Positions 42,548 through 57,730 of a stretch of 64,000 bases of DNA are shown here, one piece after another; position 1 is the first letter of the stretch; every line of letters starts with the position of its first letter. This DNA is from Anthoceros angustus. Lineage: Eukaryota > Plantae > Anthocerotophyta. The translations under genes and the position numbers were made by a program. The stretch is taken from positions 62,001 to 126,000 of the forward strand of contig MU008203.1 in NCBI GenBank assembly GCA_010909165.1. Direction: 5' to 3'. Under the pieces are notes generated by a model. That model worked only from the letters and a program-made list of their open reading frames with translations, did not search any database and had not been told where the DNA came from.

Positions 42548-44640
42548 CTATTTTTCGTCTGCGACACGCAGGTACGGGCTAATGTCCCCACAGATTTGCC
42601 AGATTCTCACAGTTCCGTCGTCACTCGACGAGGCCAGGAGTCTTGGATCCTGTACCAGATTTAGCGTGGTGAGAAAGGGATAGCCAAGAGACACAACAGA
42701 AAATAGAAAAACACAGTGAGCTCTTACGGTTGGATGCCATCTGACGCAATTGATGTCACTGAGGTGAGCCTTATCATGCTTCAGAACTAGAGAGTAGGAA
42801 GGGCGTTCACTCTGTGGCGAAAACAAGACACGATCAGGCATCAGGCTGAGTAGTTGGGCGATTCTGTACATGCAAACATGTGCTCATGAGGGAAGAGAAC
42901 TGATGAAGGAAACCCGAAGTATCACTGACCGGTGATGAGGTATCCTCAGCAAAGCCTTGCATGGAATCGTCACCTGAACCAGTTGCTATAATGGAGTGCA
43001 AGCTGCACAAACAAAGGCAGAACAAGCGAATCGATCGGGCACAATGTGGAGGCAAAGCTGTGTCGGATCTGGATCTGAGTCATGGAGGCAACAGGCTGAC
43101 CTTGAACAATGAACAGAAAAGATGGTGCGGTTGTGGTAACCAGTGATTGTAGTGAGATGCTTCCTGTCCGATGGATGTTCAAAACGCTGAAAGTTAACTA
43201 CACACTCCCATCGGATTTTGTTAAAGGGCTAAGGCATGTAACGATAGTCTCATTCGGGAGTCCTGGAGTTCTTACCATGGCCCAAAACCGACCCCGGTAG
43301 ATTGCGATGGGTCTGTGCTCGAGTCCCAGACCATTATTGACAAATCGTCACTGCAGGCACAGGAACGAGCTTGCGAGTCAGAAAACAGAGACAGTGATGT
43401 ACCGAAATTCCAACTAACAGAACGATGGGATGAAATGGCAAACAGCGCACCTACATGACACCATCCGATCACCAGAACCGCTGAATGACACGGCCCAAAC
43501 AGTTGAGCTGTGACCACTGCAGGTTTGAAACAGTCATAGTTCATGTCGGACCTGATAACATTGTACAAGGAAACACATCACTTCTCGAGTATGTGCCAAA
43601 GAGATGTACATTCCAGGCTCGCCAATCGTTTGTACGCATCCCCAGTCGTCGTCTCCCCCATCTTCTGCCCAAATCTGCACACCAGCCCGACCCAGAAATA
43701 TATTACAGCGAGCCAGAAGGACCATCTCGCGGAAGGTTGATAATGAAGCTGGAAGAGAGAAACCACACACCTTGATTGTATTATCATAGCTGGCAGACAC
43801 TAAGAGATCACGTGCAGGATGCCACAGCACCATCTTCACATCTTGTGTATGGCCAGTGAGCACGGAGACGCATTCGAAGTCGTTGCCTGGCTGCACTTCC
43901 CATATCCATACAGACTTGTCTCGGCTGCAGGTAGCCAAAAGTGTGCCTTGAGCATTCCAGGAAACGCTCTTCACCTCATGTTCATGTCCCTGCCACGTTA
44001 CAGACAAACAATCTTGAGACACAAGGAACTACCCTCATTCCTCACCGAACTGCGACGAAGGAAGGTACATACTTCTAGAGACGCCACACACTCAAATTCA
44101 GCCCCCACGTTCTCCCAGATGGCGGTTGTTGCATCAAAACTTGCTGTGGCAAGTAGCTTCCCACCCGGTGACCAGTCACAGGACCTCACCGTCCGGGTCT
44201 GAGTTCCCTGGAGCACTGCCTAAACAGGACAGCACGGGTATCAATTCAAGTACCATCCCTCCAAGGAATTGTACCTTCCTTCCAGAAAGACGAGCAAAGG
44301 CAAGAGCAAGGGCAAGAGAAGAACCCGAATCGCAGAACCAGCTGCCTGCCACGGAAGGAGAGGCAGCAGAGTGCTGCCACACCCGGACAGTCTTGTCCCC
44401 GCTGCAGGAAGCCAGCAACGACTTGCTCCCCTCCGAACCCGCCGGGCTCCATGCCAATCCCCACACCCGGTCCGTGTGTCCCTCCAGCTCCTGCACCAGT
44501 TTGAGATGCAGCCCTAGCGGGAGTCGGCCATCTTCGCGCTTCCCACAAGTCGAGTGCTCCTCGCTCTCCTGCTTCTTCCGCTTCGTCTCCACAATGCCTG
44601 GCTTGTCGGCACACTCTCCTGCTCCTCCTCCTTCAGCCAT
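42548..44640 (-). CDS. CIA1: Cytosolic Fe-S cluster assembly WD40 protein, multi-exon
   Basis: [15 protein letters not shown]...[13 protein letters not shown]; [28 protein letters not shown]; FECVASLE|[12 protein letters not shown]...[11 protein letters not shown]; [13 protein letters not shown]; [12 protein letters not shown]; [14 protein letters not shown]. Confidence 0.93.
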
Positions 44641-44894
44641 GGTGGAGGTGCAGCAAGCCTGGCTCACCGGGTCAGCGGCATCCAGACTGCAGCCATCGCA
44701 GTGCAGCGTGCTCGTCAAAGACGGCACTACCGCGGCCGCCATAACAGCCCACAATCACTCCCGGGGGCAGCAGCGACCGCCAGCTGCCCAGTGCGTAAAT
44801 TCTCGATATCTCTCGGAGCTAGAGCAAGCCGCACTTTACTGAACGATGCGATCCCGCGTGGAGCTTTGTGGGTTGTGAAAGTGAAGGACTGCAG

Positions 44895-47297
44895 ATGTGG
44901 GAGCAGCGGTGTGTAAGCGCGAGGGCCGGCGGGTTGTCTGCGTGGGGCGCTGCTTTCTCATGGAGGTCGGGATTGCACCCAGCATCAGCTGGCAGAGGGC
45001 AAAAGCCACGGAGCCCCTGGCACCCCGTGCTTGTGGTTGGTGCAGGTGCAGGAGAAGGAGAAGGAGTGTTGGATTACCACAGCCGGACAGAGGTAGATCC
45101 CGTCTTATTGGGTCCCCGGATGCCCTTGTCCAACAATGCCACCACCTACTATACTGGGCACCAGGCGGATGCCCCCAGCAAGGAGGTCTGGAGAAGGAAG
45201 AGGATAGGGTGGCTGTGCAAGGAGCTGCCCGTGCGGAGAGGGCGTGAGATTGCTGGCCTGCTCAAGGACCAGAGAAAATGGATCAAGTGGGTGGATGCGC
45301 AGAAGGTGATGGAGCAGCTTTTGTTCCTCCGGGAGTTCGTTTGCTGCTACCATGTATGTATCGGCTTGGCCTTGGTCTTGTTTCTCCTGCCTGGTCATTG
45401 ATGCTTGGGTTCCAGGGAGTTGGAGTTGACAGTGATCTGCTTTGGGTCACAGGTGTACAAGTGGGCACATGCTCAGCCTTGGTATGAGTTTGAGTACGGC
45501 TTGACAACACGGATAGCCAATTCGCTGGCTCTGGACAGGAAGGCAAGCAAAGCGCACGACCTTCTGGATGTTATCATGCGCAGTGGGAGTCCACCTGATG
45601 CAGCTACCTTCTCATCCGTGATTGTGGCTTACATTAAGGAAGGGCAGGAGGCATCTGTGAGGGAGGCCTGGAGTGTGTACAACCAGATGAATCTTGTGGG
45701 TGGCTATGATCCGCCGTTGACAGTTCAGAACAAGCTCTTCTCTGCCCTGGTGTGCATGGCTGATGATGTGGCTGAGTTTGGTGACCATGCTGATGTTGTG
45801 TTCCACCACATTGTGAACGCGGGTCACCCCTTCAGCACAGAGATGTGTGAATCCCTGATGCGGGTCCACGGCAGGATGGGAAACAGGAGGCAGTTGTGGT
45901 CTGTGGTTGGGAAAATGGAGAGGACTCAACTCAGACTGGGTTTAGCAGGGTTTACGTCTATCTTGCAGCTCTGCGCCAAGGAAGGAGATGTAGAAGGTGC
46001 TGATAGAGCGTGGCTTGACATGGTTAAAGCTGGCATTCAGCCCGACGGGCCCGTTTATCTGCAGGCTATGAAGACATACGGAAGGGCTGGATTCCCCTGG
46101 AAAGTTCACCAGACATTTCAAGACATGGTGAGCAAGGATATGGAACCTAGCTACAAGGCATACTTGGTTGTTCTTCAGAGTATGGCAGACGCAGGTGAAG
46201 AAACTTGTGCCCTTAAGTTTCTAGACTGTCTACGCTCCAGTGGTATGGCACCTTTGTTACCTGCATACAACGCCATCATGGGTATGTACCTGAGGATGGG
46301 GGCTTTCGACAAGGTCAAGGTGACATTTGATCAGATGCAGGGACAGCAGTGCCGTCCCAACCGTGAGTCCTACAACACGCTTATCGAAGCCTACACCAGA
46401 GCTGGTCTCCTGGAACAAGCAGAGGAGGTGTTCGAGTTCATGCTGAACAACTATCACCCCAATCAACGGACGTACAACCTCATGCTGCAAGGCTATGGCA
46501 CAGAAGGTAACTTGAGCAAGGTGAAGGAGGTGGTGTCTGTCATGAACAGGCATTGTCAGGTCGAACCTCAGAACAGAGAGGTGGTCACAGCTGCATTCTC
46601 GTCTCCAACCACCTCAGCCGAAGCATTGCCTGCAGCAGCACATGACCTGACTCTTGACACTTGCCAGAGAGAAACACTGGTGGGTTTGTTGCTGGGTGGG
46701 GCTCACATTGGTACTGACGATGACGGCCTAACCTTCCGTGTCAGATTAGATCTTGATCCTACCAGCTTTGTCGCCGTAAGCCTCTTGCAAAACCTGAAAA
46801 CTATCTTCGCTGAATGGACTCAGTCACCACCTCCAGATGGTACCTATCCCAGCCTGCTTCAGTTTCAAACCATTAACCACCCTTCCCTTCGATTCTTCGC
46901 ATCCCAGTACAGACCCGGTGGGAGAGCAGCTATTCCAAGGCTCATTCATCGCTGGCTAACTCCTCGAGCATTAGCCTACTGGTACATGCTCAGTGATCTC
47001 ATGAATGGAGACATCCTGTTCCACAACCCCGGGTATAGCTCAGAGGACATCCTGCTCCTCTCCAAGGCCTTCAAGGCCAAGGGGCTCGACTGCACAGGAA
47101 ACAAGGATGGTTGGATGCATCTCAGTGAACAAGGGGCCCAGCTCGCATGGGAGCTCATGGAAACACACCTACTGGTCGAAGTAAGGCAAACATGCAGGCC
47201 AAGGCGCTCCGTTGCACCACAACCGTTTCAGGATCATCCTGTCTCCCAAAGTCCATGCTTTGCACATCAGATATCATACAGAAGGTGCGTGTCATGA
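44895..47297 (+). CDS. OTP51: P-class PPR protein with C-terminal LAGLIDADG-like domain (plastid splicing factor), 2 exons
   Basis: WRRKRIGWLCKELP; PPR tract; then QRETLVGLLLGG and IPRLIHRWLTPRALAYWYM, matching OTP51 architecture. Intron at ~45353-45432. Confidence 0.88.
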
Positions 47298-48693
47298 ACC
47301 CAAATGGGCATCGCTCAATTCTTGAATCCCTACACAAGAAAGTACCCAGCCACCATCTCCCTGATGTACAATCTATATTCATATGTACATGTATACGAAT
47401 CCTACGATTCTAATGTGTACGATTGACCAGTCACGAGACCAGCACGACCAGGCGGCAAGAACGCATGCGGCATGTGCATGCTAGCACAAGCAGGCCGCTC
47501 CCTTTGCTCTGGGATGTTGACCGGCTGAACGGCTATGGCGGACGCGTGGGCTGCAACGGCTATGCCCATTGCCGATGCCGGATAGCATCGGCCGCGACCG
47601 GTCGGCGCGCCGAGGCTTTAGACGCTAAGCTGCATTGAATCAGGCGACGTTACCGTTAGTGGTGGTGGCAACGGCATCTTTCCATTTTCGCCCGGCAGTA
47701 ACTGCTACCGGATGGAGGTAACCGTTGGGATGTCGCCGCGACCGGTCGCAGGAGAGCGGTCGGCAGCGGGGCCTGTCGTGCTGTTCATCCTGGACGGATA
47801 GAAGAAGCGGAGCTGCGCAGGCTCGCTCCAGCTTCCGCCAATCTCCGGCGTTTTGCGGAGATAATATCGCCAGAGAAGAAGCTTGGAGTGCGGGCCGGGC
47901 CTCTTCTGGAAGCGATCGTGGGCGTGGATTGTGCGGATTCCGAGAGGTTGGGTGGTCGTGACCGGGTTTCTGGAGCTGAATTGGCCCAGCCGGAGAAGCA
48001 GCTGGTGGAAGGAAGGAAGATCTTCTCCTGGAACGCCAGGTGAGGACCTGCTGCTTGCTGCTTGCTGCCCCTGCTTGTCTGCGGGCTGCGATTCTGGGAT
48101 GGAGCTGGAATTGCCGTCTCCGTTTCTGGGCATATCGATCACACTGGTCGGCTTGCATGTCCTGGGAATTCGAGTGTCCGGGAAGATCAGTGTGCGGGGA
48201 TCGGGGGGTTGCATTCTTGTCTTTGTCTTGCTCAGGTGATCCTTGTCTGAAGTGTGCATTGTAGTGTGTCTTGGTAGCTCTGGTCTTGTTTTCCTCACTC
48301 GGTTCCTTCGTCTCCAGTCTGGCTGGTGTTTTGGTCGATAGAGGTGTGCCTTATCTGAGGACGATTCACGAAAATGGCAGGGAATTACTGATTGCAGGGG
48401 CACAATTCCGTGACGAGCAGGAGGGGAGATCACTTGATTCAGCAGCAGCGTTTGGTTTGGTGGAGTTCTTAGCTATGAATTTGTCTTCGCTGCTGAACGT
48501 GTCAAAGAGCAGGGTCTGGATTCGGTTACCTGTGAATGGGATTAGGTGGTCACAGGAGACCTGAGGATACCACGGTCAACGTGACATGAACTTCTTCGGC
48601 TTTGCTGTTCTGTGGAGCCTAAAAGTACAATTGCTGTCGAGTGATAGCTGCCCTGCGTGGGAATTTTGACAATTCTTCACTGAAATTTCTAAC

Positions 48694-50368
48694 GATGACC
48701 ACCACGACTAGGAATAGGTCTACAGGTGCTTGGAAGCCCGAAAGATTGATAACCCACAGTGATGGAACATTAGAAGCACCGAGATCGCCTTTGCTGGATC
48801 CAGGGCATAAAATAGGGTTTTTGGTACGCTTCCTGCAGTCATGGGCTTGCGGCAGTCAGTCATGGTCCTTGACTATCAAACACAAGCCAAAGCAAGCGAT
48901 TATGGGACAACCAGAGTACTCCACCCTGGTAGTCAGACCGGGGGATTGCCTTTCAGAAATATCTAGGACAGTTGGGACTCCCATTGATATCCTGCAAAGA
49001 GTTAACAACATCGCCAACATAGAATCTCTCAAGGTGTGTCCAGATTTACCCTTACCTGGCCGACGTGATTAGCTGCTTTTGCTTGTCCTGCTTTGAGAAG
49101 ATTGGTCAATGCTAGTTCCTATCCTGCGTGTGGTGTGATGTTTTTTGTGTCTGCCGTTCGTGACAGGCAGGACAGACACTTTTGATACCACGGAAAAGTC
49201 AGCAATCCAAACGGAGCAATGTGTGTAAGTGCTCATATGCACTTGTTTTGTTGATGTTGATCTGTTCTCTGGAGGACGACGATGCCACACATGATCAAAG
49301 TTGAGTGTTAGCCCAGTCTTCTGGTCGCCCCTCGCATCTCACAACCTCGAATCTATGCAGGGGAACGGAAGCAGAAAACAGAGAAGCGAGTCATTGCAAA
49401 CTGGGGTGATTCTCTATGGAGCCTTGCTGAAGATCACAATGTCACAATCGATGACATCCGGAGATGCAACAACTTGCCTCAGGTATATCCTCAACGTTGA
49501 CTGAAGGACTTTTCCTCCAGGACGCTGTTGGTTGCTGAGTGTTTGGCTGTGGTGGTCTTGAGCATGGCTAACGACTTTCATTGCTTGCAGGGATCCAGCC
49601 ACTTATATCTCGGACAAGAGCTTATAATCCCTGCTCCTCGAAAACGGACAACACCATTGCTATACCGCATACCGCCTCTTCCTTATCTTTTGCGGCCGGA
49701 GAATTTGCAAACAGTACCTGTTCTACGAAACATATGTAAACACAAGCTGGTGCTTGCAATATTGCCGAAGTGGCGGCCTGAGCCATTCGGTCTCCCCGTG
49801 GAAGGTGGCTGGTTGAGCTCGTTGTATGGGTGGAAAGGTGGAGACTCTCGACTTTGGCATCTCTTACTGTGAATCATGTCCAATGAGATGGATCTTTTCG
49901 AAGGTGACAAGCATTACTGAGCAGTGTTTCACTATCGGTAATCTGCAGATGGACGATGGTACTTCCATAATGGCATAGACATTGCTGTAGAACGAGGAAC
50001 CGCAGTTTGTGCAGCTTCAAGTGGCAAGGTCAGCTTCTTTATTGGTGTTAAGCAGGAGCTCCTGGCCCAAGGGCTCTCTCTTCCTCGCAGAGAATCCTGA
50101 CTGGCCCTGTTGTGCCTTCGTGCAGGTTACATGGTCTGGCTGGAGAGGGGGTTACGGCAAGACAGTATGCGTTGATCATGGGGACGGATATGCAACTCTG
50201 TATGCTCACTGTGACGACTTGCATGTCAGGCTTGGCCAGTTTGTACGAAAGGGGCAAGTCATTGCTCTTTCTGGAAATACTGGTCACTCCACAGGTCCTC
50301 ACCTTCACTTTGAGATTCACAAGGACGGCCGCACAGTTGATCCACTCCATCATCTTCCCCCTCTTTGA
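48694..50368 (+). CDS. LysM-LysM-peptidase M23 protein (NlpD/MepM-like peptidoglycan endopeptidase), about 6 exons
   Basis: LysM1 VVRPGDCLSEISRTVGTPIDILQRVNNIANIESLK|AGQTLLIP; LysM2 VIANWGDSLWSLAEDHNVTIDDIRRCNNLPQ|GSSHLYLGQELIIP; M23 FGLPVEGGWLSSLYGWK|DGRWYFHNGIDIA...|GYGKTVCVDHGDGYATLYAH...GNTGHSTGPHLHFEI. GT-AG introns keep frame. The start codon is uncertain. Confidence 0.9.
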
Positions 50369-53300
50369 TGAAGTTGATTGGCAACTTCGAGTTTAAAGCC
50401 CTTGCTGAGTGCAAGGTCCACAACGAGAGGTGCCTTTTTTGTTTTGACAAGTGCTTCCTTCGGCTTCTAGAAAACTACGACTGGGATTGGCTTGAAGAAG
50501 CTCCTACATTTTTGGCGATGAAGTTATTCTGCTACCCATATTCTGATACCCATTTTGTACAGCAAAACCATACCTGACATGCCTTGGGCTTTCACTCCCT
50601 TGGCAGCACTCATTCTTTGTAGGAAGCAAGCGAAGGATACTTTGCGTTGCTGACATGCCTCTTCAGCTCGAAGAAAGATAACATGGTATTGTTTTTAGCA
50701 GGGCAGATGCTATCTCTGGCTGCAGAGCTCTCTCGGCCCCATGTGTAATAAGGAGTCCAACCTCTCGAATCGTCCATTCTTGGATTAAACCACAGTCTAC
50801 TATGATCTGTCATGTTTCCGGTAGCCATGTATCAGGCTCCCAGGCTCCCTTATGTGCAAGTGAGTGGCAAGGGTACGCAAAAGGCACGCTATTTGCAGCC
50901 TCTTTCTATCTGCAGAGGTGTAATGCCATCCGCAAGTCGTGGTAAACCACTCCGTGATTGTTCCTGTTAGGCTAGCTAGCGTCATGCATTTCTTCCTGTG
51001 CTTAGTTCGCAACAGGAGCAACAGCAACGTGGACCAGGATTCTGTATGTTATGCGACGAGTAGGCTTCCCGTCTGATGGACGCATCCAAGCTTAGCAATC
51101 TCCAGGTTGTAAGCTGGGCACAATCATTGGTCACTATCTACGCACAACACGTCTCGTACAGCCCTTCTCTTTCAGCATCAGGCCCGGGAGAATGTCGTGG
51201 CACCAGGAAGCTTCTCTGGTTCTTCCTTCCTTTCTTCACCTAACTGTAGGGATCATGGCACAGGCAATCTGGCTGTCGGTCGGTGCAACCAAACAGGAAG
51301 AAGAGCAAGGCCTCCACTCCAAGACCCAAGCTGCTGCCGCTGCTGCTGCCGCTGTTGCTGATTGAGAAGGAAGCGTGATCCCGGACGAGTGCATGATTTC
51401 AACCTATTCCCAGTGATGATTCCAATTGCAGCAGGCCATCTCCTCATGTTTATCTATCACTCTCCTTCCATTCCATAGGACACACCCGAGCCACGTCCCG
51501 CGTCCATGATGACATGACTATCACGCGATCTCCGTGGTTACCATCAAAAGAGGCCTGCTTGGACTTTTCTTGGTTCTTTCTGCCTTTCCCGTGCTTTCTG
51601 TTCCTCTCCCTTTACTCCAACACTCCATTCTCGTCACTGCCTTGAGTGAGGCAGGCTGAAGCTGCCCAGGAAATGGGCCATTCCTTGGCTCGACGCGGGC
51701 TGGACCGACAGTACAAATGTACCACTGTAATGCATCCAGTTCAGACACGCGGTCAGGTGTGGAGCCGGGTGTCATGGAATCCCGACAACGCTGTACTGCC
51801 CAGTAAAAGTACTGTACTGAGCAGGAATAAGAATTTTTCACTTATCCCACATCCACGTCGAGACATGTTGCAACCGGCCTCCCATTGGACTGGGATGCAT
51901 GCAATGCAAGTCCATGGTCGCCTGCTCCTTGGCCTCTTCCTTCTAGAAGGAGATGTCAAAGGCGCCCACTCAATGTCCGCTAGCCCCTGGGCATGGAGCC
52001 GGGGTGGAGTCTGGAGAAACATCCCATGCCGTAGCCGTCGCCATCCCATCCCGCATGAATCTCCGGCTCCACAAAGCAGCCCAACCCCCCTCAAACCGCA
52101 TCTGCCGCTTCCCGATGCGGAATCATCCGCCTCCCCCCCCCGCCCCCTCATGAATCTGCTGCACCACAAAGCTCCCAGCGTGCCTGAAGCGATCCACATG
52201 GAACGATGCAAGATCCACGATAGTACTTCTAGTCCCCGGCCTGCGCTAGTGTATCTGGTCTAATCTGTATCAGTCCTCCCCATCCCACCAGCTGAGAGCT
52301 CTAGGCAAGCAGCGAGTCTAGAGGAGCTGAACTTGTGTGCAACAATGCGATGCTGATATGGATCCATCACCCACACACCGCCTCATCATCGCCAGACTCC
52401 CTCCTGTGACTTCAAATTCATGTCATTGCGACACCAGGCCTGGTGGGGTGGGGTGGTGCACCGGCCATATCTCCAGCTCCCGCAGAAAAACATTAAAATA
52501 CTGACTCAGAGGGAGTTGCAGGCCTGAGTCTGTGAGAGCGGCCACCAGGGGAACGATGTTCGAAGAGGATGAGGTCAGAGAGAGAGACCGGATGACGCGC
52601 GGCCGAGGTCTAATTTTGGACAGGAAAACGCCAAAGCTTGATGTGCTTTGGTCCTGGGCCCATTTGTCTGAACGCTCCTGACGCCGCGGTCGCCCGACTG
52701 GCCAGCTCCGTTCGCGGACAGGCTACAGCTCGGCGAGCAATGGATGCAATGGCTACCGCTTTCTGTAAAGGATATCCATCGATCTCCATGTGTTTATAAT
52801 ACACGTACACGAGATCGCTCGGTCTTCAGGCCCGGCTAGGCCAACTCCACTAAATCAGAGTCCCGCGGACTTTAATATACTTCTTCTTCTTCTTTCATGA
52901 ATCTAGCTCTGGCTGGAGGAAACCATTCGAAATGTGTCGCGCTGAAGAACTCACTGGAGGGAGTCCGGATCGAAGCCCAGAAACAGGGCACGTTGCACAG
53001 CAGAGCGAGATGTGGTTGTGGTGAGATCCGATCGCATCAGTGGGTCATTAAATTGATCCCCGAGTCCCGAGAGAGATGGACCTGAGAGACTCTGCGAGCA
53101 TCGCCCATGTGCCCTCTGCCAGGCCTCCTACTCCACATGTGTGAGCTCGCGTGGGTGCGGCATTCCGAGGACGCCTACGCTTTACAATTGCGGCTTTCTC
53201 CTCATCCAGCGAGCGAGCCATCATCAGTTTGGCAAGTCCCCACCTTCACTCCATCTCCATGCCAAGAATAGCCCCGGCCGAGCTGGACTGCAACAATCGG

Positions 53301-53850: not shown

Positions 53851-54824
53851 TAGGGCCTATTACACCTCCGCTGCCACGTACAGCAGAGGAATCTGACCGG
53901 TTACAGGACGACGGAGTATTGGAAATTCCAGGTGGGAAATAGGGACAAAACGGCACATGCTCCACGTTGCGCGCGAGACTGCCTTTTCCATTAAATGGGA
54001 TATCCCGCATTTAGGCACTGCTGTCTTGCTGCTCTGGCTCTGCGTAATGTGTACAAACGGCCTGTTTATTCTAAGGTACGGCACGCTCGTCTCGCCAGTG
54101 GCCACACTCTCGCCACTCCCCGCCTCGGGCTCGGGTCCGGGCGTCCGGGCCAGGGGCCTTGCTCATCGCCTTGCTCATAAATAGCTAGGTACCCACAAAC
54201 TTGGTCTAATATATTTTAAGCTTATTCGCTCCCTGCTTTCCTTCCATCTTATTGGCCACTCATTTTAATACCTATGGGCTAACTACCTGTGCAAAATGTC
54301 AAGTCCATGATTAAAAATGTTATGTTTTCTTTCAGCCCCGTAATGAGAACGCTGAGCTAGTCACACAATGATTATGATTCCCTCCAATACCGATGATGCT
54401 ACTGTCATGGTAGGTTAAGAACTTACTAGCACTTGATCGTGTGCAAGCTCTTCATCCGATGTTCAAAATCAGCACACAAGAGTCCACAACATGTGTAGGC
54501 CAAACCATGGGCAGGATTTGAGTATCGGCTAAGTGTCGGAATATCCTGCGACATACTCACGTTTTGACTCAAACTCTCTCTTCAACAAATCATGACGATG
54601 CCGAGTTGTGTATGCATCCATCCCAGCATCGCCTTGCATTCCCCCTCCCTACATCACGATATTAGGATACCTCTTGATACATGTTAGACACACACTTAGT
54701 GTTTTTTTTTTTGAGTCATAATTCAAAGAAGTGTCAGTCTCGTATGCACTATGCTGCATTAGATCACCTCATACAGCAACTTAGCCAACTAATCCTTAAA
54801 AGTTACCTCATTCCTACTAAACTC

Positions 54825-57730
54825 ATGGCCACTGGAACTTCGTCTAGTCCGGCAGGTCCAACATTCAATTCTGAGCTCAAAGAGAAAGACTGTTTCAATG
54901 GATCTAAATACCAAGTCTGGAGGGTCCGAATGAAGACTACTCTTGTTGCCCATGGAGTTTGGCCAGTTGTTGATGGAACCTTCAAGAAAGCCCAACCCCG
55001 CAAGCACTCCCCCTCCTACACCAACAGACATTCAAAAATGGGATCAGCTGAATTCCATTGCTATTGCTCTGCTGATTGGTGGGTTGGACGCAGATCTCCT
55101 ACTTGATGTCATGTATCTGGCTAGCGCAGAAGAAATATGGGAACAACTTGCTTCCACATATGGTGACAAGAATGTGCTTCGCAGGATAATGGCACCAAGT
55201 TTGTGAACAATGCCTTTGACTCATACCTGCATGAGAATAGCATGCAGAGGCAGTTAATAGTGCTTTACACTCAACAACAGAATGGGGTGGCCGAGCGCAA
55301 GAATCAGACCTTGCTTGGCATGACCAGAAGCATACTATTATGGGCTGGCTTACTACAAGAGTACCGGCGGAGGCTGTGGTCACAGCCACCTACATCAGAA
55401 TGCGGAGCACCAGAATGTGCTTCGCATTCTAATCTATTGTGATAGATCAGAATGCGCTGTCCGCGTGTTGACCAGTTCCGTCCCAAGCCAAACCCCCTTT
55501 GAAGTTTACTGACATAGAAAACCTAGCGTGCTTCACCTTCGAGTGTTTGGATCCAAAGCATTTGCCTATGTCCTTGTAAAAAAAAGAAAGAAGTTAGACA
55601 ACTGTTCTCAGAGTGTGATTTTTTTGGGACATAGAGAAACCGTGAAGGCTTTCAAACTCTACGACCCGGATACATATGTTGTTGTCCTAGCCCGTACTGT
55701 CACCTTCTTGGAGTCCCCTGAGCCTGCTTCACAGTCCTCATCCTATGTCCCACATGGCACACATTCATAGGGAGATCCAAGGGATACTGAACTTGATACA
55801 GTTACCTTCCCCATAGATGACGCTGACGCTCCGGATGGTGCTGCTCTTTTAGGTCCAGATGACCCATGCCAGATCCTCAAGTAGCCCGAACTCATGACCC
55901 ACAGTTTGCGGACCTCCTCCCAGTAGGTATTCCCCTCGACCATGTTGATGAACCAGTGGATGGCCTAGTAGTTGATCAATTGGATGGCCTAGCAGCTGAT
56001 CTAGGGAGGTTCCTTAGCCTGATCCACCGCCAGAGCTTGAGCATGACCCAACTCCCGGACGATCTTCATGATATCGGCCTCCTCCTGACTAGTGGAGGGA
56101 GCCTCGTCATCAGTTTGTGGACTTCAGGACTTTTGTAGCTGTCTATGGCACCGCTGTTGACATTCTCCCTACCGAGGAACCCCGTTCCTACAAGGCTGCT
56201 CTAGCTAGCCCTGATGCATCTAAGTGGCAATCAGCAGTGGAGGATGAATATCAATCCTTGCTGAAGAACAAGACTTAGAAACTTGTTGACTTACCCCCTG
56301 GACGCAAAGCAATCTCTTGTAAGCGGATTTTTAAACTCAAGTTGAATGTACAAGGAGAAATTGCGAGATACAAAGCCAAATTGGTGGCTAGGGGATTAAC
56401 CTAAGTCAAAGACTCGACTTGATACCTTCTCCCCATTGGTAGATGCACAGTCTATTTGCATTCTGCTATCTCTTGCTACCAAGTTGGACGTGGATCTCCA
56501 ACAAATGGATGTATGCACTACTTTCCTTTATGGGAGGTGGGGGGGGAGACTTGGACGAAGACCTATACATGCAGCACCTGAGGGTTATGAGGATCATCAG
56601 TATCCAAACAGAGTACTAAAGCTAGTAAAATGCATCTATGGTTTGAAGCAGAGCGAGAGGGTGTGGTATATTACCATACACATATATCTCCTAAGCATAT
56701 CTTTTGTCCAGAGCACTACCAACTCCAATGTGTTCAGGCTCAGCAAGGGGTCCGACTTCGTAGTGCTTGCCTTGTATAACGACAACGTCATCCTCGCAAC
56801 ACATGGTCAACCCGTGTTAGCTGAAGTATTGCCTATGTATATAGATACTTAGGGTCCACTGAGAAGAACTTCTAATTATCCATCTGATGCATAAATACAT
56901 AAATTATTTTGCACAAGTGCAAGCTGGACGAAGCCAGACCAGCCACTACTCCTTATGTCATAGGAACGAAGCTTACTAACTTGCAGTGCCCTCATACTGT
57001 AGAAGAAGTGAGCGACATGAAGGATGTTCCCTACATGCACGATGTTGGCAGTTTGATATTGACAAAATTGTGAGTAATTGGACAAGGCCCGACATCCAAT
57101 ATTCTATCAGCGCATTCTCACAATTTCAAGATAATCTGGAAGGCCACATTGGATCGCCCTTGAATGCATCTTCAAATACTTAAAGGGCACATACAACAAT
57201 GGATTATTTTACAGGAGGAGCGGACAGCGGAAACTCACCTTATTTAGGTTCACTGATGCCAACTGGGCATCCCACAATGACTCCAAGAAAAGTCTGTCAA
57301 TATATTGCTTTTTGCTCTCCTCCGCTGCCATGAACTGGTCATGCAAGAAACAGTCCTCCATTGCTCTCTCATCTACAAAGGCAGTATACAAGTCATTAAC
57401 AGATGCAACAAAGGAGGCACAGTGGGGAAAAAAATTCCTGCTTTACTTAGACCAGACACAACAGCCACCTACCTCCGTCTTGTGCGACAATATGTCATCC
57501 TTGGCTCTTATAGCAAACCCTCAATTCCACACAGGCATACACACATAAAAATACATTATCATTATATTAAGGATGTGGTGGAAAGAGGGGTAGTCAAGGT
57601 ACTTGGCTACGTGCACACAGATGAAAATGTTGCTGATGTACTCACAAAAGGCCTTAACAAGCACAAGCATTCTAAGCACATGCCAGGCTTGGAGCTACAT
57701 GACTACACAACATACTTCAATGGCAAGTAA
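54825..57730 (+). mobile_element. Decayed, internally deleted Ty1/copia retrotransposon
   Basis: gag FNGSKYQVWRVRMKTTLVAHGVWPVVDG and AEEIWEQL; integrase DNGTKFVN...QQNGVAERKNQTL; HLRVFGSKAF; RT EPRSY, YKAKLVARG, QMDV, IYGLKQ; RNase H NWSCKKQSSIALSST, CDN, NVADVLTKGL. A possible PPT+TGTTAG LTR start lies at ~58340-58355. Confidence 0.9.

Follow-up and report, generated by a model that had tools for sequence, protein, structure and literature searches.

The window analysed here, a 64,000-nucleotide stretch of the hornwort Anthoceros angustus (contig MU008203.1, positions 62,001 to 126,000), carries a nuclear gene for a protein with two LysM modules followed by an M23 (LytM) peptidase domain, and we consider it probable that the reading which best explains the evidence holds as a whole: that this is an expressed, six-exon, streptophyte-wide relative of DipM that acts on plastid peptidoglycan. 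It is established that the plastids of bryophytes and streptophyte algae contain peptidoglycan; very little, by contrast, is known of the enzymes which cleave it, with DipM1 and DipM2 being the only ones that have been tested. A second set of moss LysM-M23 genes, to which the gene described here corresponds, now emerges as a conserved, expressed and constrained family that reaches back to Mesostigma and is not a recent acquisition from soil bacteria.

The joined reading frame occupies positions 48695-50368 of the forward strand and consists of six exons, which together provide 1089 nt encoding 362 amino acids and a stop (Table 1). The start codon (48695-48697) lies one base later than the position at which the initial annotation let the gene begin (48694), and an in-frame stop (48638-48640) is found shortly 5' of it. 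The introns measure 133, 136, 108, 111 and 97 nt and all five are bounded by GT and AG; the GC content of exons and introns (0.44-0.56) is in line with that of the window (0.48). A spliced plant gene with five GT-AG introns had been called from the DNA, and exactly these introns are precisely absent from contigs of four sequencing runs: one of the four contigs is identical to the window and 2133 nt in length, whilst the other three are approximately 93-95% alike and derive from other organisms. In the run that provided the identical contig, 67% of the words sampled from 48500-50600 were present, approximately the value for an intron-free copy. Because GT..AG introns have been precisely removed in four organisms, the contigs are in any reasonable reading transcripts, the RNA nature of the runs being a guess. 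In run X2, from a related organism, a contig of low depth (2.9 versus 73.7) contains intron 3 and continues into exon 4: this is unspliced RNA or DNA carry-over. The identical contig continues beyond position 48500 by about 320 nt in the 5' direction and beyond position 50600 by about 297 nt in the 3' direction; provided that the mRNA leader is unspliced, it measures about 515 nt or more. Five upstream ATGs are present in the leader (48157-48669, forward strand) and open short reading frames of 5-35 codons; comparison with one relative (L059, leader of 542 nt and likewise with upstream ATGs) revealed no conservation of the leader sequence or of the upstream reading frames, and as the upstream ATGs are not kept in this relative, no role is claimed for them.

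Table 1. Features of the LysM-M23 gene, with positions given in the window and residues (aa) in the predicted protein.
Feature	Position	Strand	Description
mRNA region under contigs	48500..50600	+	2133-nt identical contig extends past both ends
Exon 1	48695..49033	+	aa 1-113; N-terminal region, larger part of LysM module 1; contig of run X1 unbroken over 48500-49031
Exon 2	49167..49224	+	58 nt; moss orthologue exon equal in size and phase; contig-supported
Exon 3	49361..49482	+	122 nt; contig-supported; matched in moss orthologue
Exon 4	49591..49837	+	247 nt; end of LysM module 2, conserved helical linker, start of M23 fold; contig-supported
Exon 5	49949..50028	+	80 nt; HNGID; H262 at 49966-49968, D266 at 49978-49980
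Exon 6	50126..50368	+	243 nt; stop at 50366-50368; H310 at 50207-50209, H341 at 50300-50302, H343 at 50306-50308
Introns 1, 3, 4, 5	49034-49166, 49483-49590, 49838-49948, 50029-50125	+	GT..AG
N-terminal motif (aa 40-56)	48812..48862	+	IGFLVRFLQSWACGSQS; ahead of LysM module 1; common to window protein, mosses and Sphagnum
LysM module 1	48926..49190	+	aa 78-121; intron 1 within; Pfam; beta-alpha-alpha-beta unit, pLDDT > 90 in P0156 model
LysM module 2	49390..49632	+	aa 143-187; intron 3 within; Pfam E 7.6e-07; P0156 model
M23/LytM domain	49789..50365	+	aa about 240-362; introns 4 and 5 within; Pfam, orthologue model

For the database comparisons, the queries were individual exons or P0156, an orthologue of 82% identity, and not the whole spliced protein. 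In searches with single exons, the Pfam LysM profile was matched by exon 1 with an E-value of 1e-05 and by exon 3 with one of 7.6e-07, whilst Peptidase_M23 was matched over its profile positions 2-23 by exon 5 and over positions 24-96 by exon 6 (E 1e-27); P0156 itself exhibits two LysM stretches and Pfam PF01551 with an E-value of 8.6e-37. The LysM-LysM-M23 order proposed in the initial annotation is thereby borne out, as is its placement of two introns inside the LysM modules: intron 1 cuts the first and intron 3 the second, with introns 4 and 5 cutting the M23 domain. Likewise, the HNGID and HLH motifs are intact as claimed, and no catalytic residue is missing: H262 and D266 (HNGID), H310 (YAH), and H341 and H343 (HLH) are present, with these histidines and the aspartate invariant in alignments of 13 and 45 sequences. 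The PDB matches of the exon 6 sequence include active M23 enzymes. An AlphaFold2 model was obtained for P0156 rather than for the window protein (mean pLDDT 80.5), in which both LysM units and the M23 domain exceed a pLDDT of 90, an ordered helical linker that is both conserved in and specific to the family spans approximately residues 190-235 (pLDDT at least 90), and the N-terminus is disordered apart from a lone weak helix over the WACGSQ motif (pLDDT approximately 59). The M23 part of this model superposes best on StM23 (9gy1), with an rmsd of 1.4 Å over 123 columns, and the model can also be superposed on two further LytM domains, from EnvC and from Caulobacter DipM. When P0156 and the P. 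patens protein P0153 were scored against the NCBIfam equivalogs celldiv_DipM, MepM, NlpD, EnvC, ActS and ShyA, both fell far below every curated cut-off: the top model, celldiv_DipM, gave 121 bits, with the cut-off at 740, and MepM 102, with the cut-off at 341. The family instead possesses its own signature, GGWLSSxYGWKDGRWYFHNGIDIA, together with the conserved helical linker. From these residues and profiles we predict, with high confidence, that the protein is an M23 peptidase that is LysM-anchored and catalytically competent.

Constraint on the gene was estimated by comparison with the 78%-identical coding sequence of P0156, for which dS is near saturation and the values are hence rough: dN/dS was 0.054 overall, 0.013 for the M23 domain, 0.009 and 0.021 for the two LysM modules and 0.105 for the N-terminal 73 residues. 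The whole frame from Met1 is under constraint. A pseudogene or retrocopy is ruled out by the introns, the intact frame, the overall dN/dS and the plant nuclear genes that flank the LysM-M23 gene. With regard to the neighbourhood, a 630-residue intronless reading frame at 45405-47297 (forward strand) displays PPR repeats followed by LAGLIDADG_2 and resembles OTP51-type organellar intron-splicing factors. Several WD40-repeat reading-frame pieces at 42548-44754 (reverse strand), transcribed away from the LysM-M23 gene, are probably exons of one WD40-propeller gene, and pieces of a Ty1/copia retroelement (a DUF4219 gag-associated motif and an RVT_2 reverse transcriptase) are found at 54681-56852 (forward strand).

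The family was recovered by searching 1.84 billion representatives with exon 6 and then searching with the best full-length match, from which the best 120 matches were taken. Its eukaryotic members comprise three Sphagnum sequences, two P. patens loci, two sequences each from Spirogloea and Mesostigma, one from Mesotaenium, four from Closterium and three transcript-derived proteins, amongst which P0156 shares 82% identity with the window protein. Identity to the P. patens proteins is 66% over residues 16-362, and the P. patens gene consists of exons of 459, 58, 122, 247, 80 and 243 nt; exons 2-6 are equal to those in the window in both size and phase, and hence all five introns predate the split from mosses. 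Judged by sequence and exon structure, moss LOC112272999 (XP_024357048.1) and LOC112277931 (XP_024366610.1) are orthologues of the window gene; we found no later paper that tests these two genes experimentally. In the four Closterium members (P0108, P0110, P0161 and P0162) the M23 domain and the family signature are kept and both LysM modules are lost. JGI metagenome proteins labelled 'murein DD-endopeptidase MepM / NlpD' (P0155 and P0268-P0280) are 89% identical to a Sphagnum member; most likely, genes of mosses have here been assigned to bacteria in metagenomes of peat or moss. A search with a Mesostigma query returned the family first, followed by sequences from Deinococcota, Chloroflexota and Synergistota, with no further eukaryotes after the family among the best 120 matches. 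No named member from a seed plant, fern, lycophyte, liverwort, Klebsormidium or Chara appeared among the best 120 matches in the length band searched, and the range of the family is patchier than that of peptidoglycan synthesis.

Proteins of this general kind have been described previously. Miyagishima et al. 2014 (PMC4015805) reported nuclear genes for 'DipM' proteins combining LysM with LytM/M23 in Cyanophora, Physcomitrella, charophytes and Selaginella, and a survey of lectin domains (PMC6362431) listed LysM-M23 combinations in glaucophytes, charophytes and bryophytes. In the former study, recombinant Cyanophora DipM and moss DipM1 cleared cyanobacterial sacculi in zymograms; DipM1-HA was found over the chloroplast surface and was processed, though no transit peptide was predicted; and the dipM1 dipM2 double knockout contained few chloroplasts, which were enlarged and had a single FtsZ ring. 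Of the moss genes, these experiments covered DipM1 and DipM2 and not the two 'additional DipM homologs' (GI:168061355 and GI:168053993), which were set apart and ascribed to transfer from non-cyanobacterial bacteria. By elimination, as there are four genes in two pairs, and not by an accession match, these two homologues are LOC112272999 and LOC112277931. The window gene fits the broad Archaeplastida LysM-M23 kind, being nuclear, interrupted by introns, spliced and encoding two LysM modules N-terminal to the M23 domain. In the initial annotation, identity with an already characterised orthologue was named as an outcome that would count against its interpretation, and this applies in half: the kind of gene has been described in both of these papers, but DipM1 and DipM2 are a different paralogue pair.

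The age of the family was assessed using maximum likelihood trees built from about 140 columns of the M23 region, with 79, 87 and 97 rows. In all three trees, the 18 eukaryotic sequences form one clade, with support of 96/95, 99/97 and 99/97. Within the second tree Mesostigma branches first, followed by Closterium, Spirogloea and Mesotaenium and next by two transcript-derived sequences, with the window protein and P0156 placed last, beside the mosses. This branching matches the accepted order of streptophyte species and thus argues for vertical descent since the early streptophytes rather than for a transfer at the level of mosses: judged by these trees, the family is ancient in streptophytes and reaches Mesostigma. 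The trees do not single out a bacterial source, with no supported bacterial sister in any of the three trees of about 140 columns. The nearest bacterial rows are of the Halanaerobium, Clostridium and Bipolaricaulota type, with support of at most 84/71, whilst a sampled clade of cyanobacteria is placed in another part of the tree and deep nodes exhibit support below 85. A member of the latter clade (P0394) ends in NPIAFLPSR, and the primer for Synechococcus elongatus DipM encodes an IAYLPSR end; the clade is probably the DipM-type clade, as far as these ends can tell. A sister position of eukaryotic and cyanobacterial sequences was not rejected by the AU test (p 0.317, approximately 140 columns). 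Language-model features (query P0153) point to cyanobacterial LysM-M23 clusters, which we treat as a lead only since the trees neither support nor reject a cyanobacterial affinity. A scan of bacterial and archaeal genomes returned Riflebacteria, proteobacteria, Moorella and Chloroflexota, a list biased by the two family-specific peptide patterns that were used.

With respect to targeting, the window protein exhibits neither a signal peptide nor a membrane segment (the highest 19-residue Kyte-Doolittle mean is 0.96), and no conserved N-terminus resembling a transit peptide was found across the family members compared. The N-terminus had been described as Thr/Ser/Arg-rich, which applies to the first dozen or so residues; however, four acidic residues occur within the first 40, and the composition is not kept in the orthologues. 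Moss N-termini contain 7-10 acidic residues among the first 40, unlike classical transit peptides, and since the N-termini vary by lineage, being acidic in mosses and Ala/Arg-rich in some algae, targeting is not readable from sequence. The ...LQSWACGSQS motif, absent from the algal members, could be a targeting or processing signal.

Turning to function, peptidoglycan of the plastid is the substrate for which the evidence speaks best, with the balance at most slightly in its favour, and a plastid peptidoglycan hydrolase, as proposed in the initial annotation, is the most plausible candidate function. This substrate is suggested by the DipM precedent, by the retention of the full peptidoglycan synthesis set in all surveyed hornworts, by the loss in seed plants and by the low-copy, conserved nature of the family. 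The LysM modules would hold the protein on peptidoglycan strands, enabling the M23 domain to cut peptide stems or cross-links within the layer between the two plastid envelope membranes, and the enzyme would help to remodel this wall during plastid growth and division, perhaps with partial overlap with DipM. Redundancy can be partial at most, since the dipM1 dipM2 knockout is defective though the two orthologues of the window gene are present. A more specific form of this reading, which we put forward tentatively as a possibility, is that streptophytes have two LysM-M23 lineages: DipM, derived from a cyanobacterium, and the present family, which predates Mesostigma and may perform a non-redundant task in the plastid wall, with unconventional targeting via the N-terminal helix. 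Such a task could, for example, be turnover across the envelope and not septal splitting.

Several other readings of the gene were weighed against action on plastid peptidoglycan. One is that the protein is a lytic enzyme employed in defence or symbiosis, directed against pathogens or towards the cyanobacterial partners of hornworts instead of the plastid: the M23 enzymes lysostaphin and zoocin A are bacteriolytic, LysM modules also serve plants in microbe sensing, and no plastid-type leader is evident. We regard this as unlikely, as the protein carries no signal peptide for secretion, the family has been kept from Mesostigma and the zygnematophytes to mosses and is not known to be linked with cyanobacterial symbiosis, and its strong purifying selection and low copy number are unlike those of typical fast-evolving defence genes. 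The role with symbionts that the initial annotation offered as an alternative finds no support, the family being present also in algae and mosses that have no recorded cyanobacterial partnership. A further reading retains the enzymatic activity and changes the substrate, for example to a host protein rich in glycine, the LysM modules then binding another GlcNAc-containing polymer. The specificity of M23 enzymes is not readable from sequence, LysM binds chitin-type glycans as well as peptidoglycan, and the range of the family matches that of peptidoglycan synthesis imperfectly; nonetheless, all characterised LysM-M23 proteins that were retrieved act on or bind peptidoglycan, and the matches listed for the family include no seed plants, most of which have lost the full peptidoglycan pathway, such that another substrate appears quite improbable.

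A plain orthology to DipM (moss DipM1/DipM2 or Cyanophora DipM), which would render the gene fully known, is very improbable, even though the same kinds of domain occur in the same plant groups and celldiv_DipM is the top NCBIfam model, as its score stays far short of the cut-off. The DipM1 cloning primers encode a start of MVFKWPTLR... and an end of ...PLKWVRL, whilst the P. patens proteins P0153 and P0264 start with MSSWLRDLL and MTSWLRDLL and end with ...LPPL, differing from DipM1 at both ends; the DipM1 end motifs (MVFKW and KWVRL) are absent from these moss orthologues and occur in none of the 399 proteins scanned. Moreover, DipM1 and DipM2 were not among the best 120 matches in searches from any of the three queries (Sphagnum, cyanobacterial and Mesostigma), and the 2014 paper separates the two additional homologues and reports their affinity as non-cyanobacterial. 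The window gene is not an orthologue of DipM1/DipM2, being set apart by the ends encoded by the primers and by the grouping in that paper. Hardly more credible is a role as a non-catalytic regulator that activates other hydrolases, in the manner of NlpD/EnvC or Caulobacter DipM: whilst close structural matches do include LytM domains of EnvC and of Caulobacter DipM, the zinc ligands and catalytic histidines that dead regulators lack are present and invariant in the family, and P. patens has no entry for AmiA in the table of division proteins from 2014, so that no amidase partner is listed. The initial annotation had made the same distinction from the dead NlpD/EnvC proteins on the basis of retained ligands, and it holds across the 45 aligned sequences. 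Finally, bacterial contamination or a very recent transfer, to which the bacterial domain architecture and the 'MepM/NlpD' label given to relatives by metagenome pipelines might point, can be dismissed for practical purposes, given the five spliceosomal introns removed in transcripts, the GC content matching the window, the plant genes and copia element on the flanks and the intron positions shared with moss, in agreement with the nuclear origin claimed for the gene from the start.

As the kind of gene was already known, what is added here is modest: the 'additional DipM homologs' are an ancient streptophyte family, present in this hornwort with conserved introns, and no new kind of biology is opened. 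The suggestion made in 2014 of a transfer at the level of mosses is corrected, and the family becomes a sensible candidate for the wall-splitting activity that remains in dipM mutants.

Comparison with known systems places the window protein closest to moss LOC112272999 and LOC112277931, which are alike in the LysM-LysM-M23 order, the linker, the WACGSQ motif and the positions and phases of all five introns, and which differ in a longer, acidic N-terminus (402 residues compared to the 362 of the window protein). DipM1/DipM2 and the DipM proteins of Cyanophora and Synechococcus elongatus likewise combine LysM with LytM/M23, the eukaryotic ones being likewise nuclear-encoded. DipM1 cuts sacculi in vitro, localises to the surface of the chloroplast and, jointly with DipM2, is required for normal division; it provides a model for how the window protein may work, although DipM1/DipM2 constitute the other paralogue lineage, with other protein ends and a reported cyanobacterial affinity. 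With active bacterial M23 enzymes (the Csd1/TagE-type 5j1l, StM23 (9gy1), ShyA/MepM, LytM and lysostaphin) the plant family shares the fold and the H-x3-D, H and H-x-H residues, whilst it differs from them through its own signature, helical linker, introns and NCBIfam scores below the cut-offs. In case of E. coli NlpD and Caulobacter DipM the LysM-LytM architecture is alike, as is the LytM fold of EnvC; however, NlpD/EnvC and Caulobacter DipM are devoid of the catalytic residues and activate amidases or other autolysins, whereas the plant protein keeps all of these residues.
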